A stretch of DNA of 61,985 nt, the filler included, from Choristocarpus tenellus KU-1152 (lineage: Eukaryota; Protista; Phaeophyceae): the NCBI GenBank assembly GCA_964200185.2. It is 14 parts of 14 records of this genome, joined end to end, with 100 filler letters (N's around TTAATTAATTAA, not from the genome) between each part and the next. Parts side by side here need not be neighbours in the genome. Positions count along the whole stretch, not along the records: positions 1 to 7,138 come from CAXNAD020006628.1; 13 more parts are not named here. One strand, written 5' to 3'. The notes beneath the pieces are model-generated. The model worked only from the letters and a program-made list of their open reading frames with translations. It ran no database searches and was not told where the DNA came from. Shown piece after piece: positions 1 through 7,138 of the stretch (position 1 is its first letter; each line of letters opens with the position of its first letter). The position numbers and the translations under genes are program-made.

Positions 1-837
1 TGATTGATTATATTTAGGTGGGGCATGCAATGCCACATAAAATCATAAATATTTCCTTTAATATGAGAAAGATTCTCATTCAACTAATCACTAGTAAAAA
101 TTTCTGATAACTCAACCACTAATTGATTGTTTTGTTACTCCATACATCTTTTACCGTAACTGTCCGATAGAGTTGGAAGAGTCTAATCGAACAATACCTT
201 CATCTCTTGGTGAACTATCCAGTCTTGTACATCCCCATGTGCGGAAAAATAAACTAAGTGGTATGTATGGTTGTTTGTATATGCAAGGTGATGGTTTGAC
301 ATTCCTGTTTGAATGTATTTGGCGTACTCCATTTGCTGTATGATTTGTAGCCTTACTGTTTAAATATTAGATTTGATGTTCCATAGAAAAAGACACTTGG
401 ATGATAATGGCTAGTCTGTCATAGATGTTTCATGGTGTTTATTGAGTGTATGACAGTGGTGGATTCTTAACGCATTCAGAGGTCTCTAGTTTATTTTTAT
501 TTTGTGTATGTTGTGTATAAAAGCAAAGGTACTCTTTTTGTGAATTGGATGTGTACTGTCGAAGTAAATGCTTTGATGTTAAGTACTAGAAGAGATTTGA
601 TTACTCCTGTAGGTTGAAGAGTATTTGTATTTTTAGTTAGATATTTATTGTTTATATAACCTATGAATGTATATTGTCACACAGGTGAGGTACATTGACG
701 TGAAGTGGAGTAAGTGTTTTTTTGTGAATTGTTAGTGATGTACTTGTTGTTCATTTTGTGTATGGTTGTGTTACCCGCAAAGGTAACCTTACTTCCTATG
801 TGTGAACTGTGTGTGTCTTGTATTTCTTCCCAAACAG

Positions 838-909
838 GAGACATACCTTCATCTCTCGGTGGCCTCTCCAATCTTGTGCATCTCGACCTTAGTTTCAATA
901 ATGTACATG
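838..909 (+). CDS. 72-nt LRR exon GDIPSSLGGLSNLVHLDLSFNNVHG (open)
   Basis: CAG acceptor 835-837, GT donor 910, one 24-aa LRR. Confidence 0.9.
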
Positions 910-1522
910 GTATGTTTGGTTGTCTAAGATGCGAGGTTGATTCTTTGACATTGTTCTTTGCATATATTTGACGTACTCCATTTGTTGTGTGATTTGTGGG
1001 CGTATTGTTTAAATATCAGATTTGATATTCCGTAGAAGAGGGCATTTGGATTATATTGACTAGTGATAAATATGATAATGTGTTTGTTGCGTGGGTGATC
1101 ATGGTGGGTTCTTGACACATTTGGAGGTCCCTAGTATATTTTGATGTCTTGCATGTTTGATGTCTAGTGTATAAAAGCAAATACACTTCTTTTGTGAATT
1201 GGATGTGTACTGTTTAGATAAATGTTTTGATGTTAAAGACTAGAAGAGAATATATGAGTCCTGTAGGTTGAATGAGTACTTTTATTGTTGGTAAAATATT
1301 TAATATTTCTGTAAACTACGAATATATATTCTCACACAGGTAAGGCGCATTGATGTGAAGTGGCGTAGGCAGTTTGTTATGAATTGTTAGTGAGATGCGT
1401 TGTTGTTGTTCACTTTGTGTATGATTGAGTTTGTTGTTAACTCCAACCTAACCTTACCTCCTGAGCTAACCCCACCTCCTATGTGTGAACTGTGTGTGTG
1501 AAATGTATTTCTTGCCTGACAG

Positions 1523-1594
1523 GAGATATACCATAATCTCTTGGTGGACTCTCCAATCTCGCACATCTTAATCTTAGTTCTACTGAACTACGTG
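1523..1594 (+). pseudogene. 72-nt LRR exon with in-frame stop
   Basis: GDIP*SLGGLSNLAHLNLSSTELRG; TAA at 1534-1536 where other copies have TCA. Confidence 0.9.
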
Positions 1595-1766
1595 GTATGT
1601 TTGGTTGCTTGTAGATGCAAGGTTGATGCTTTGACGTTGTTGTTTTTATATATTTGATGTGCTCCTTTTGTTGCATGATTTGTGGCCATACTGTTTAAAT
1701 GTCGGATTTGATGTTCCGTACAATAAGATGTTTGGTTTATATTGATTTGTCTGTGATAGTTGTGAC

Positions 1767-2119
1767 GCTGGATATGACAAACCCTAAATCCCTACCTCAA
1801 TTTATATTAATCCTACTCGATCAAGTCGATAAACCCACAAGAGGTGAACCAACCCAATCCACACTTAACCACAAACCAACACCCAAAACACTCCATCCCA
1901 GAAATCGACCCCTAAGGAGGCTACTTTTGCAACATCTAAGCGCTAAGTACATACGCTAGATGCAGACTATGCAATATTCCACCGAAAAAATACCCTCCAT
2001 GATTAAAGACACTCGAATATGCCTTTTTCCAAACATTTTCATACCATTTTCCAACACTATATAAGGGCCCATTTGGACACCCCAGTGCAGACCCTCACCC
2101 CCCCCAGATACTTTGGCCC
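1767..2119. mobile_element. ~350-bp insertion in an LRR intron ending in a MITE family B terminus
   Basis: Absent from sister introns; ends CCATTTGGACAC...CCCCCCAGATACTTTGGCCC; left terminus not recognisable. Confidence 0.7.
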
Positions 2120-2546
2120 TTACATTGTGTTTGTTGCGGGGATGACAATGGTGGGTTCTGGACGCATTTAGAGGTCCCTAGTCTAATTTGATACCGTAGA
2201 TGTTTGTTGTGTAGTGTAAAGAGCAAATATACTTCTTTTGTAGATTGGATATTGTTAAGACAAATGTTTTGGTTTTCAGGACTAGATGAAAGTAGATTGA
2301 TCCTGTAGATTGAGTACATTTTATTGTTGGTTAGATAAATACCTTATGTTTCTCTCTATATATGTATCTATCGATGTATATTCTCAGACAGGTGAGGTGT
2401 ATTAATGTCAAGTGGTGTAGGTTGTTTGTTGTGAATTGTTAGTGATATGCGTATTGTCGTTCATTTTGTGTGTGATTGTGTTAGTTGCAAAGTTAACCTT
2501 ACCTCCTATGTGAGAACTGTATGTGCCTTGCATTTTTCCCCAACAG

Positions 2547-2618
2547 GAGACATAACTTCGTCTCTTGGTGTTCTTTACAAGCTCCAAGTTCTCATTCTCA
2601 GCAACAACAATATATGTG
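2547..2618 (+). CDS. 72-nt LRR exon GDITSSLGVLYKLQVLILSNNNICG (GC donor)
   Basis: CAG acceptor; donor GCATGT at 2619 where sister units have GT. Confidence 0.85.
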
Positions 2619-3209
2619 GCATGTTTGGTTGTTTATAGGTGCGAGGTTGATGGGTTGCCATGGGTGTTTGTATATATTTGACGTACTACATTTGTTGTGT
2701 GATTTGTGTTCATACTCTTTAAATTTCAAATTTGATGTTCTGTAGAGTAAGACATTTGGGTGATATAGACTAGTCTGTGATAGATGTGACATTGTATTGT
2801 GTGTATGACAATGGTGGATTCTTGAAGTATTCAGACCTCGCTAGTTTAACTTGATGTTATGCATGTTTGATGTGTAAGTGTATAAAAGCAAAGATACTTC
2901 TTTTGTGAATAAGATATGTACTGTTGAGATGAACATGTTTTGATGCTAAGGACTAGTAGAGAGTAGATGAGTCTTGTAGGTTGAATGAGTACCTACTTTG
3001 CTGGTTAAATATTTAATGTTTCTGTAATTATCTATGTCTATTCTCACACAAGTGAGGTGCATTGATGTGAAGCGTGTAGACTGTTTGTTGTGGATGGTAG
3101 TGATGTGTGTTGCTATTTTTCACGTAGTGTAAGATTGTGTAGTTAACCGCAAAGGTAACCTTACCTCCTATGTGTGAACTGTGTGTGCCTTGTATTTCTT
3201 CCATAACAG

Positions 3210-3282
3210 GAGAACATTCCATCATCTCTTGGTGGCCTCTCCAATCTTACTTATCTTGATTTCAGTTTCAATAATTTAAGTG
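3210..3282 (+). pseudogene. 73-nt LRR exon (+1 frameshift)
   Basis: GAGAACATTCCA has one extra base; rest reads IPSSLGGLSNLTYLDFSFNNLSG. Confidence 0.85.
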
Positions 3283-3788
3283 GTATGTATGGTTGTTTGT
3301 AGATGCAAGGTTGAAGCTTTGCAATGGCTATTTAGATACAATTGACGCACTTACATTTGTTGTGTGATATGTGGCCTTACTATTTAAACGTTAGATTTGA
3401 TGTTCTGTAGAGTATGACATTTGGATTATATTGACTAGTCTGTGATAGATGTGACATTGTATTGTGTATATGACAATGTTGAGTTCTTGACGTAGTTTGA
3501 ACTCTCTTGTGTATTTAGATGTTTTGATGTTGAAGACTAGACGAGAGTAGATGAGTCCTGTACGTTGAAGAGTACTTTTCGTTGTTGGTTAAATATTCGA
3601 TGTTTCTGTCAACTATTAATATATATTCTCACACAGGTGAAGTGCATTGATGTGAAGTGGTGTAGGTGGTTTGTTGTGAAGTATTAGTGATGTGTTGTTC
3701 ATTTTATGTATGATTGTGTTGTTAAGCGTAAAGCTAGTTTCACCTCCTATGTATGAACTGTGTGTTACTTGTATTTCTTTCCCAACAG

Positions 3789-3860
3789 GAAACATACCTT
3801 CATCTCTTGGTGGCCTCTACAAGCTTTAAGTTCTCTATCTCAGTGACAATGAACTAAGTG
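3789..3860 (+). pseudogene. 72-nt LRR exon with in-frame stop
   Basis: GNIPSSLGGLYKL*VLYLSDNELSG; TAA at 3827-3829. Confidence 0.9.
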
Positions 3861-4457
3861 GTTTGTTTGTTTGTTTGTAGGTGCGAGGTTGATGGTTTAC
3901 ATTGCTGTTTGTATATATTCGACGCACTACATTTTTTTGTGTGATTTGTGTCCATACTGTTTATATGTCAGATTTGATGTTCCATAGAGGAGGGCATTTG
4001 GATAATATTGATCAGTCTGTGATATATGTGACAATGTGTTTGTTGTGTGTTTGACAATGGTTGATTCTTGAGATATTCAGAGCTCTCTAGTTTCTTTTGA
4101 TTTTGTGTATGTTGTGTATGTTGTGTCGTGTATAAAAGAAATATATACTTTTTGTGAATTGGGTGTGCAATGTTTAGATAGGTATATTGTGATGTTAAGG
4201 ATTAGGCGAGAGTAGATGAGTCCTGTAGGTTGAAGGAGTATTTTTTGTTATTGGTTAGATATTAATGTTTCTGAAAACTATTAATGTATATTCCGACACA
4301 GGTGAGGTGAGTTGATGTAAAGTGGTGTAGGTGGTTTGTTGTGAATGGTAGTGATTTGTGTTGTTGTTCATTTAGTGTAAGATTGTGTTGTTAACCGCAA
4401 AACTAACCTTACTTCCCATGTGTGAACTGTGTGTGCCTTGTATTTCTTCCCCAACAG

Positions 4458-4529
4458 GAATCATATCATTATCTCTTGGTGGTCTCTCCAATCTCGCAGT
4501 TCTTTTCCTCCGTTACAATGAACTAAGTG
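4458..4529 (+). CDS. 72-nt LRR exon GIISLSLGGLSNLAVLFLRYNELSG (open)
   Basis: CAG acceptor, GT donor at 4530. Confidence 0.9.
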
Positions 4530-5862
4530 GTATGTTTGGTTGCTCGTAGATGCAAGGTTGATGCTTTGACATTCCTGTTTGAATACATTTGGCGAACTCC
4601 ATTGTTGTGTGATTTGTGGCGTTACTCTTTAAATGTCAAATTTGATGTTCGATACAATAAGACATTTAGATGATATTGACTAGTCTGTGATAGTTGTGAC
4701 ATTATGTTTCTTTCGTGAATGATAATGGTGGGTTCTTGACGCATTTAGAACTCTCTAGTTTAACTTGATGTTGTGTATGTTGTGTAGTGTATAAAAGCAA
4801 AGATACTTATTTTGTGTACTGTTGAGATAGATATGTTTTGGTGTTCAGGACTAGTGGAGAGTAGATGAGTCCTGCAGGTTGGATGTGTACTTTTATTGTT
4901 GGTTAAATATTAAATGTTTCTGTAATCTATCAATGTATATTCTCACACAGGTAAAGTACATTGATATGAAGCGGTGTAGGTGATTTGCTGTGAATTATTA
5001 GTGATGTGCGTTGTTGTTGTTCACTTTGTATATGAATGTGTTAACCGTAACGCGAAGCTTACCACATATTCGTCAACTTTGTGGGTTTTTTACTTTGAGG
5101 ATGGAAATTTATAAATTGGATTCAGTAATGATATCAATATTAATATTGTTCTGGTGGTGCCATTAATGTGAAACGATTGTTCATTTTTTTGTTGGGTAGG
5201 TGTGCTCCCCACTTCTGGACAGCTTCGAGCACTTAGCAAGGTCTTGGTGGACGGTAAGGAGTATGTTTGATGGTGTTTGATCATCAGTATTTTAGGTTTG
5301 TGTTTCAAGGTATTCCCATTACCGAACGTTGAGTTGGATGAAATTTGTGTGGTGAAATGTTCAGAGGAGTATAACTACAGGAGGTGGGTTATATGTGTAG
5401 ATATTTTGCTTGTGTTGACTGGATTGTCAGAACTGAAGAGAGGTTTGTCTTGTTTTTTCCTCTCTGATCATAATGCTTCCTCTGGTGTTGAGGTATTGAG
5501 ATTATTGACTTTGCAGGTTCTGCTTATGCCACAACACTCTCAAAAACATAATACCTGTACCTAAAATAAAGTGTTGGACAGTTGCCTTTCTAAGTTTAGC
5601 ATGTGACGTGCAGATTGGGACTTAGACTTGATGAAGGGAAGGAGGGGTGAGAAATATCCAGTAACTATATCATCAAAGGACTTTGTGCCGAAGTCTCGAC
5701 CGGCAGGTTTGTTATTTTTACTTATTTAGTTTGACCATCCAACATTTGATGTTGATGTCATGATTAATATTCGTATGTGGTAGAATGTGACATGAAAAAA
5801 TATGATGGCAGTATTTAGTCATGCATGTGTTTAGTTCTCACATCATCGTTGTCCTTTGGCAG

Positions 5863-6722
5863 GTGTTACTGGGAAAATGGTGGCATGGAAACTAGGACCA
5901 TACTGTGAGACTTTGGGGTCTCCTGACTTTGAGCTGAAGGTTACTTCACTTAAGTCGATGTTTGATCCAGAGATGTTCACTTCAACTATGGACAGTATTC
6001 CGGCACTGATGACGATGTCATCAAGTACAGCTACTTTGGATGGGAAACGCTACTTGCTGCATCCCGCGGTGACCTGTTCAGCAAGAGAAGGTTTAGAATT
6101 TTCCTCACCCCTTCGACTGGGGTTTCCTGTTAGAGATGAGGAGAGAATAAACGTTGGACCAGATGATGAAAATCGTGTTGAGGGTAAGGAGGAAGCTTAC
6201 ATGAAGTACCTGGAGCAGGAATTTGGAGTGTGGGTACAGGAAGAGGGTGGTATGGAAGGGGTTTCTCTTGAGCCAGAAGTTGTGCAAGTGAAGAAGACCT
6301 TTTCTCTTGAAGCGTTGGTACCTTACTTCCCTAAATTCACTCTTGCGAGGCTAATCAATGAGGACAATAGTGTTAAAATTGTCGACATTGAGAAATTTGA
6401 TCATGAGAGCAGAACGTATGGGTTCCTTTTTGTCATCGATGGCCTTAAGAATGCATCTGGTGAGCCGCAGGACGTGACTGTCTTGTATAGGGATAGCTCT
6501 GTGTCGAGAGTCAGCGCAACTCATTGTGGGCTGTCCATCAGCCCCTTTGAAGGTGGTGCGGTAGATGTGGAAGCAAATTCTGGAGTTCCAGGAAATTGTG
6601 TGTTGAGCTATCAAGTCAAAGTTAGTGAAAGTGATCTGTGTATGTTAAGTGTTCCATGGACGATGGTTATATGGGTAACACAAAAGGAGCAAGAGGAAGG
6701 GCATCGAATAGTTCAGGATTGA
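5863..6722 (+). CDS. Terminal exon, ZU5-like domain followed by a beta-rich (UPA-like) region
   Basis: Open ~286 codons after a CAG acceptor. LLHPAVTCSAREGLEFSSPLRLGFP fits the ZU5 pattern LLSPvVxCgPxGxxFxxPVxLxxP. LVPYFPKFTLA sits where vxHFSxFxL lies. Confidence 0.65.
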
Positions 6723-7138
6723 GGAAAACGCCGTATGGACCACAAGAAAGCAATAGTATTTCTCAGTGTGTAAGGAATACCCTCTTGTGCGCAACTTGAT
6801 ATTTGAGACGTGGTGGACCGTGAAGAGGCTATTTGCCGAGCACTACTTAGCATCACGCCAAATATGTAAATTAATATATAAATGTATCTTACGTGTCTGT
6901 ACGGGTTCCTTCTAGTATGAGGAACAGCTCAACACCTCAGGCACATGATTCATTTTTTTATTGGAGTACAATCGTAACTTTTTTTGTCAAATGGCAGTTA
7001 ACTGGTAGTAGGTCAAAATGTTCTTATACAACAGCAGATTTCAAAAATTGAGGATGGAGCTTTTCATTGAGGATGGGCTTGACCCAAAATTGACTGGGAA
7101 AAAGTATCGATATGTTTTTTTTTTTAATGATGCTTTCT

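Follow-up and report, generated by a model that had tools for sequence, protein, structure and literature searches.

A family of brown-algal proteins, real and apparently undescribed, joins leucine-rich repeats (LRRs) to a C-terminal module whose first half has, in predicted models, a ZU5 fold. A member that appears degenerate lies in a window of 61,985 nucleotides from Choristocarpus tenellus KU-1152 (14 parts of assembly GCA_964200185.2, joined end to end), positions 1-7138 of which are one complete contig of 7,138 bp, CAXNAD020006628.1 (hereafter C6628), in an assembly of 164 Mb and 27,310 contigs. This contig probably holds the 3' two-thirds of one of the family's genes, and the combination of the family, its gene architecture and a degenerate local copy is the best overall explanation, which we regard as likely to be right. 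Below, C-numbers denote C. tenellus contigs or paralogue loci, P-numbers homologous proteins and L-numbers extracted loci.

Complex multicellularity arose independently in the brown algae, a group whose immune receptors are poorly characterised. C. tenellus is an early-branching member of this group; near-identical NCBI proteins carry its name, and a land-plant origin, considered in view of the plant-type LRRs and a GC content of 35%, was rejected on that account. The initial annotation of C6628 had described LRR cassettes followed by a ZU5-like terminal exon on the same strand and contig, with phase-1 introns throughout, a description that holds for the seven units found and for the terminal exon, which begins in phase 1 at 5863. 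A search of the full-text literature found no paper combining ZU5 with Ectocarpus or with a brown alga, and LRRs joined to a ZU5 domain with an H-F-nucleophile motif would represent an apparently undescribed brown-algal variant of the PIDD/FIIND theme.

The terminal module and its family

The features of the module in C6628 are:

5863-6722, + strand: terminal exon, 860 nt, phase 1, preceded by AG at 5861-5862 and ending in TGA at 6720-6722
5863-6365, + strand: predicted ZU5-fold domain, first half of the terminal exon
6324-6332, + strand: Y-F-P, replacing the family motif H-F-[C/T]
6366-6722, + strand: predicted second β-sandwich domain, ended early by the TGA at 6720-6722 (TGG in paralogues)
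6723-6870, + strand: decayed remnant of the last ~50 codons, 75-80% identical to paralogues and still alignable

The open reading frame (ORF) containing the terminal exon comprises 288 codons (5856-6719). It matched no Pfam family at E values up to 10 and no PDB sequence, and a search of a protein-language-model atlas with it returned no usable match. Four intact C. tenellus paralogues share 62-65% identity with it, in addition to broken ones, and with near-intact copies counted in the paralogues number five. A search with a profile of the paralogues recovered only 19 representatives among 1.84 billion proteins, and word-indexed searches added a further 17 from Ectocarpus spp., E. fasciculatus, Scytosiphon promiscuus and Pylaiella littoralis, 11 of which have LRR Pfam domains N-terminal to the module. 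LRR Pfam domains and the module are found in one chain in both P0005 and P0007, and seven Ectocarpales genomes hold proteins with LRRs and the module; the search of brown algae for LRR plus ZU5-module proteins suggested by the initial annotation was productive, with Ectocarpus and Scytosiphon proteins carrying both in one chain. A more distant clade includes a protein of Ascophyllum nodosum, and every named family member is brown algal (Choristocarpus, Ectocarpus spp., Scytosiphon, Pylaiella, Ascophyllum).

Predicted structures of the module point to ZU5 domains. The model of the C6628 ORF has a mean pLDDT of 61.7, being good over residues 8-210 and below 50 past residue ~213, while that of residues 370-705 of the Ectocarpus protein P0005 has a mean of 78.4. 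With the P0005 model, the top three PDB matches in Foldseek were ankyrin ZU5 domains (6m3q_E, E 1.3e-5; 4d8o, 1.5e-4; 3ud2, 7e-4); entries of this kind were the only matches below 1e-3, and UNC5b and rat NLRP1 were returned with high probability. With the C6628 model no E value reached 1e-3 (best 4d8o, 3.3e-2), and a probability of at least 0.6 was given only to ankyrin ZU5 entries (4d8o, 6m3q, 3ud2, 3ud1) and rat NLRP1. A VIA-align comparison with 48,161 representatives and Foldseek's top 1,000 placed ZU5 entries at ranks 1-6, with these scores:

Ankyrin ZU5: 8.9-10.3
GAIN subdomain B: 7.5-8.4
rNLRP1: 7.4
CARD8: 7.1-7.3
ZO-1 ZU5: 7.3
UNC5b: 7.0
Human NLRP1 ZU5: 6.5
Nup98: 4.9

The first half of the module has, as modelled, a ZU5 fold, and the structure-prediction check of the terminal exon that had been proposed came out in its favour, ZU5 domains matching first for the window and P0005 models alike. 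At the sequence level, family profiles found a sole match in the PDB, the ZU5 domain of ZO-1 (2kxs), at non-significant E values of 1.9 and 0.44 and aligned on LLxPxVxC..G..F..P..L..P. The Pfam ZU5 family (PF00791, gathering score 21 bits) touched three of the 19 members, with P0020 and P0017 of the distant clade scoring 21.8 and 20.3 bits.

The second half resembles generic β-sandwiches only, and its profile (A7) drew nothing but noise from the PDB (a WD40 protein and TraT). UNC5CL, UNC5 and DTHD1 are ZU5+UPA proteins, and their ESM Atlas clusters aligned over 184-221 residues across both halves with TM 0.41-0.44; it is possible, judging from the models, that the second domain is a UPA. Of the LRR-ZU5(-UPA) order originally proposed, the ZU5 part is thus borne out by the fold searches, and the UPA part is not. 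The P0005 module begins with β-strands directly after a low-complexity linker, its only helical elements being two short ones in inserts.

No ROC/COR, kinase or death domain was found in C6628, as had been noted initially, nor in the full-length orthologues, which carry LRR Pfam domains only. Death and CARD Pfam families likewise had no match in the orthologues, the chains of which end ~180 residues past the motif with a single short helix. No signal peptide was seen by eye in the orthologue P0005, so the LRR-module proteins are probably cytosolic.

A Fucales-type subfamily (P0017, P0020, P0021, P0041 and P0042; L015; Ascophyllum nodosum) is encoded in DNA of 56% GC, has a low-complexity repetitive N-terminus in place of LRRs and keeps H-F-C; only its members come to the Pfam ZU5 threshold. 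A strict scan and tblastn found no LRR exons within 8 kb upstream of P0004 (49% GC, on a 1.5-Mb contig) or P0017 (56% GC), and some family members may lack LRRs.

The LRR cassettes and their link to the module

Upstream of the terminal exon lie the following features:

Beyond the contig start: 5' part of the gene including the N-terminal cap, the cap exon being seen only in paralogue C2655
171-260, + strand: first visible LRR exon, 90 nt, phase 1, open, with a degenerate repeat and a different acceptor
838-909, + strand: type I LRR exon, 72 nt, phase 1-1, intact
1523-1594, + strand: type I LRR exon, inactivated by TAA at 1534-1536
2547-2618, + strand: type I LRR exon, open, with a GC donor at 2619-2620 replacing GT
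3210-3282, + strand: LRR exon of 73 nt, with a 1-nt insertion near its 5' end that shifts the frame if the exon is included
3789-3860, + strand: type I LRR exon, inactivated by TAA at 3827-3829
4458-4529, + strand: type I LRR exon, intact, the last of the array
4887-5095, + strand: eighth repeat unit, truncated and without an LRR exon, collinear with the single unit of C2655
5200-5253, + strand: 54-nt phase 1-1 exon, open, last LRR-like segment; splice sites and ORF kept in C2655
5614-5706, + strand: 93-nt phase 1-1 linker exon, open; CAG acceptor, GT donor and frame kept in C2655 and C4044

The array consists of seven tandem units of ~660 bp on the same strand, 60-85% identical over their full length including introns and spaced at 578-685 bp, with a single spacing of 1,024 bp, in a repeat search of C6628. 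Their similarity is far beyond chance, as the unit-to-unit E-values range from 1e-76 to 1e-153. Each unit contains one LRR exon between a ...CAG acceptor and a GTATGT donor, encoding one 24-residue plant-specific LRR of the form (G)xIPSSLGxLSxLxxLxLxxNxLS(G). The canonical exon is 72 nt long with phase 1-1, a length found exactly in five of the seven cassettes; a Gly codon is split at its 5' border, one base lying in the preceding exon and two in the exon itself, so all the introns are in phase 1, and units can therefore be gained, lost or skipped with the frame kept. Three of the seven LRR exons are inactivated (1523-1594, 3210-3282 and 3789-3860), lesions at which no differences or indels were seen in the contigs of the two public DNA runs covering the C6628 stretch, which are possibly the assembly's own data. 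Mean pairwise identity between units is 0.71 for the LRR exon against 0.67-0.80 for the surrounding intron, so the exon is conserved no better than its introns. GC content is 33-40% across the repeat region and ~45% across the terminal exon.

The 72-nt exon, the consensus and the shuffled or inactivated cassettes by which type I LRR exons are recognised (Zambounis 2012) are all present in C6628, and the same ~660-bp unit forms arrays on C10882, C5335, C8695 and C2655. Ectocarpus arrays with one LRR per exon had initially been described as a feature mainly of ROCO genes, in which they do occur, but type I exons have also been recorded for five LRR kinases and for 46 of the 164 remaining LRR loci (PMC3341825).

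Every unit additionally contains a juxtaposed acceptor-donor-like site, (Y)nCACAG followed directly by GT(G/A)A(G/A)G, ~155 nt upstream of the LRR exon (683-689, 1338-1344, 2390-2396, 3050-3056, 3635-3641, 4300-4306 and 4949-4955, one unit reading CAAG). These sites may be scars of a lost exon or recursive-splice-like sites; a second exon per 660-bp unit at the conserved CAG/GTGAGG site was considered and dropped, as no open frame is attached to it.

Comparison of paralogues places the LRR exons and the terminal module in one gene architecture. C2655 is collinear with positions 4297-7026 of C6628 and has on the same strand, in order, a cap exon, an LRR exon, the 54-nt exon, the 93-nt exon and the terminal exon, the N-terminal cap exon matching residues 5-59 of an Ectocarpus protein; C6628 lacks such an exon because the contig begins 170 bp before the first LRR exon. 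The flanking intron of the 93-nt exon is unalignable between paralogues, although the exon itself and its splice sites are conserved. Similarly, in the broken copy on C9105 the module is preceded, in the same orientation, by two type I LRR exons. From this comparison we infer that the LRR exons are spliced into 5863.

The putative cleavage-site motif and the state of the C6628 copy

The turn connecting the final two strands, where the ZU5 fold ends, carries the family motif H-F-[C/T], present in all but three of the ~40 members that cover the position, paralogues included. The exceptions are P0004 (YFT) and P0014 (HSC), whose modules are otherwise intact, and C6628 (YFP). The motif Phe is residue 154 of the P0005 model and 158 of the C6628 ORF. 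The NLRP1 chain 6x6c_E (1089-1212), the last residue of which is the P1 Phe1212, aligns to residues 2-154 of the P0005 model and 1-158 of the C6628 model; likewise, GAIN chains ending at the P1 residue of the GPS end at residue 154 of the P0005 model. The +1 residue is Cys or Thr in every member checked bar C6628, and never Ala, Val or Gly. PIDD is cleaved at HF/S and NLRP1 and CARD8 at SF/S, with the +1 Ser as nucleophile and the Phe as a buried anchor, according to work on the chemistry and mutagenesis of the [H/S]F/S motif, and acyl shifts of this kind can start from Ser, Thr or Cys (PMC3210808). A +1 position that varies between two nucleophiles only is what catalysis predicts, and self-cleavage in the family is plausible from sequence and models, because the Phe of the conserved H-F-[C/T] aligns with Phe1212 of NLRP1.

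In intact members, an LRR cap at the N-terminus, plant-type LRRs in varying number and a low-complexity linker would precede a C-terminal module of ~330 residues, in which a ZU5-fold domain and a second β-sandwich would flank the tight turn formed by His-Phe-[Cys/Thr]. Self-cleavage after the Phe, through an N-to-S or N-to-O acyl shift, would yield an LRR-ZU5 fragment and a β-sandwich fragment, which would stay associated until the LRR part was acted upon, a hold-then-release behaviour modelled on PIDD1, NLRP1 and CARD8. Local cell death occurs in brown-algal resistance to Eurychasma. It is conceivable, though we think it unlikely, that brown algae own a FIIND-like 'cleave, hold, release' sensor, in which cleavage between H-F and C/T would free the ~180-residue β-sandwich as an effector upon perturbation or degradation of the fast-diversifying LRR arm, for example in such local cell death; NLRP1/PIDD-type logic would then exist outside animals, through convergence or ancient inheritance of an autoproteolytic ZU5. 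The exon structure, the membership of the family, the coupling of LRRs to the module, the ZU5 fold of the models, the conservation of the motif and the lesions are shown by the data; splicing, self-cleavage and a possible immune role we infer.

The [H/S]-F-nucleophile pattern characterises the family overall, and the C6628 copy, reading Y-F-P, departs from it. This copy is a poor candidate for self-cleavage, having no nucleophile, a truncated C-terminus and three inactivated LRR exons. The original proposal of a PIDD/FIIND-like receptor is supported in part: the family keeps H-F-[C/T] at the position of the FIIND cleavage site, the C6628 copy has Y-F-P and a truncation, and no death-fold effector is present. 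The C6628 sequence offers a natural loss-of-nucleophile contrast to its paralogues. The clearly dead paralogue at C9105:2310-3128 (L013/L007) has four in-frame stops in its module and still reads P-H-F-T.

The TGA at 6720-6722 stands where all paralogues carry TGG, and the remnant beyond it has a +1 insertion near 6758 and a -1 deletion near 6806; these three disabling lesions all fall within the final ~150 nt of the ancestral reading frame. The ~50 residues lost correspond to confidently modelled strands of the second domain of P0005. Position 5856 reads TTG in C6628, TGG in C4044 and ATG in three recent paralogues. At the module lesion sites, the contigs of the two DNA runs contained no variant. 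Ka/Ks values for pairs of paralogues are high throughout, lying at 0.57-0.75 in the deeper comparisons and at 1.1-1.6 among the three most recent copies, the latter fitting either diversifying selection or very recent relaxation. This trio comprises L003 (C19275), L004/L011 (C2655) and L005 (C24300), which keep open frames across the module. A rough three-way split of the distances gives Ka/Ks of ~1 on the C6628 branch against ~0.55-0.6 on those of C4044 and C19275. The locus is quite likely to be a member of the family that is decaying or, in the best case, truncated and unable to cleave; it is most probably a pseudogene, with a truncated variant that does not cleave as the most favourable alternative, and is in itself of limited interest.

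Two dispersed repeats accompany the gene:

1739-2138, strand not assigned: dispersed-repeat insertion in the intron of LRR unit 3, recognised by unit spacing, a switch in composition and contig depth
7030-7138, strand not assigned: high-copy dispersed repeat at the contig end, outside the gene

The insertion, C/A-rich and ~400 bp long, stretches LRR unit 3 to 1,024 bp, and its summed contig depth in the DNA runs is 8-14 times that of its flanks. On the terminal repeat, hundreds of DNA-run contigs pile up to a summed depth of ~190,000, and copies 90-97% identical to it are found on C9105 (L013 1271-1334) and C2655 (L011 1938-1997); the break in the assembly at the contig end is probably due to this repeat. 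Contig joints connect the end of the insertion (2115-2124) with the repeat at 7030, which suggests that both belong to the same mobile-element family.

Alternative readings and comparison with known systems

A number of observations weigh against parts of the favoured interpretation. Pfam ZU5, UPA and FIIND did not match the C6628 protein or the Ectocarpus and Choristocarpus members, and a six-frame search of the whole genome with the ZU5 and UPA models was also without a match, control genomes being equally silent, which makes this search uninformative. Many ZU5 domains, including those of ankyrin, ZO-1 and UNC5A-D, do not cleave, and the fold alone is no predictor of cleavage. The module could accordingly be a ZU5-type interaction or scaffold domain that does not cleave, with the motif kept for structural reasons and its Phe buried, making the family one of LRR adaptors rather than self-cleaving sensors; we hold this to be a serious possibility, albeit the less probable one. 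Its best structural matches are indeed non-cleaving ankyrin ZU5 domains, no death-fold effector follows the module, and P0004 and P0014 deviate at the motif despite intact modules. It fits poorly with a +1 residue that is one of two nucleophiles in every checked member except C6628, with H-F-nucleophile being the signature of the cleaving ZU5 domains of PIDD, NLRP1 and CARD8 (PMC3210808), and with the motif occupying the same inter-strand turn as in those proteins. A further reading, that the likeness to ZU5 is convergent or reflects a wider ZU5/GAIN/Nup98-like class of β-sandwiches, so that the module would be a new fold family, autoproteolytic or not, without shared ancestry, draws on the restriction of the family to brown algae and on the lack of a significant Pfam ZU5 match in most members. 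This we judge improbable, given that ZU5 entries hold the first six ranks and provide the sole Foldseek E-values below 1e-3, that Fucales-clade members score around the Pfam gathering threshold and that the only PDB profile match (E 0.44-1.9) is to a ZU5 domain, on its core motif.

With regard to gene structure, the runs that cover C6628 are of DNA only, and their contigs are collinear with the introns and include no splice joints; six of the 17 Ectocarpales homologues are without LRR Pfam matches; and the NCBI annotation of C. tenellus contains two stand-alone models, P0001 (292 aa) and P0002 (339 aa), whose ATG overlaps or just precedes the acceptor. The terminal ORF might be an independent single-exon gene, and the LRR array a separate gene or a reservoir of cassettes, a view to which the ATG lying exactly at the module start in the three recent paralogues, and the existence of several homologues of 340-445 aa without LRRs, also lend themselves. 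It is improbable in our estimation: C6628 and C4044 have TTG and TGG at the position of that ATG; at three loci the module is tied to the array by its canonical acceptor, by unbroken phase 1 and by two upstream exons that are conserved; and full-length LRR plus module proteins are annotated in the seven Ectocarpales genomes. P0001 and P0002 are likely to be truncated gene models, since at C2655 the module is preceded, in the same orientation, by cap, LRR and linker exons.

The view of C6628 as a pseudogene also has observations against it. Its 288-codon ORF is free of lesions although three cluster after codon 288, and were lesions to fall at random over ~1,014 nt, the later two would both lie in the last ~150 nt with a probability of ~0.02; moreover, inactivated LRR exons occur inside expressed Ectocarpus ROCO genes (PMC3341825). 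C6628 could hence be a working gene that skips its broken phase 1-1 exons and encodes a truncated, non-cleavable LRR-ZU5 decoy or regulator of its cleaving paralogues, an idea with which the intact splice sites of 5200-5253 and 5614-5706 also agree. We find it doubtful, as Ka/Ks rises to ~1 on the C6628 branch alone among the three compared, strands of the second domain with confident models in the orthologue are lost through the truncation, pLDDT is below 50 in this part of the C6628 model, and conservation of the LRR exons does not exceed that of their introns. For C6628 a decaying member of an LRR-ZU5 family is the reading retained.

The family supplies a domain assignment for part of the non-ROCO, non-kinase LRR loci that were listed without a further recognisable domain (PMC3341825), and points to stand-alone genes that are probably mis-modelled in the annotation of C. 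tenellus. Self-cleavage, if true, would carry the sensor principle of PIDD1, NLRP1 and CARD8 from animals to stramenopiles.

The animal protein PIDD1 has the order LRR-ZU5-ZU5-UPA-death domain, and the FIIND of NLRP1 and CARD8 is found in a ZU5-UPA-CARD arrangement; together with UNC5CL, these proteins make up the autoproteolytic ZU5-UPA group. With PIDD1 the algal proteins share N-terminal LRRs followed by a ZU5-fold domain, an H-F-nucleophile motif at the end of that domain and an apparently cytosolic location. They differ in having one ZU5 domain rather than two, Cys or Thr rather than Ser as the putative nucleophile, a second domain for which UPA is no more than possible, with no death domain after it, and LRRs of the plant-specific 24-residue type; their cleavage, moreover, is a prediction. 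Relative to NLRP1 and CARD8, they have neither NACHT nor CARD, do not match Pfam FIIND, and carry HF[C/T], or YFP in C6628, rather than SF/S. By contrast with the GAIN/GPS region of adhesion GPCRs, the algal module has no helical subdomain A and no downstream 7TM, its setting is apparently intracellular, and ZU5 domains outscore GAIN in the structural comparison. The closest parallel for the LRR part is with the type I LRR-exon loci of Ectocarpus, which share 72-nt exons of one repeat each (GxxPxxLxxxxxLxxLxLxxNxLx), tandem expansion of cassettes, inactivated exons and frequent pseudogenes (PMC3341825); the C-terminal partner there is ROC-COR or a kinase, and no ROC-COR ORF of the kind found in ROCO GTPases follows the LRRs of C6628, in which that place is taken by the module with the predicted ZU5 fold.

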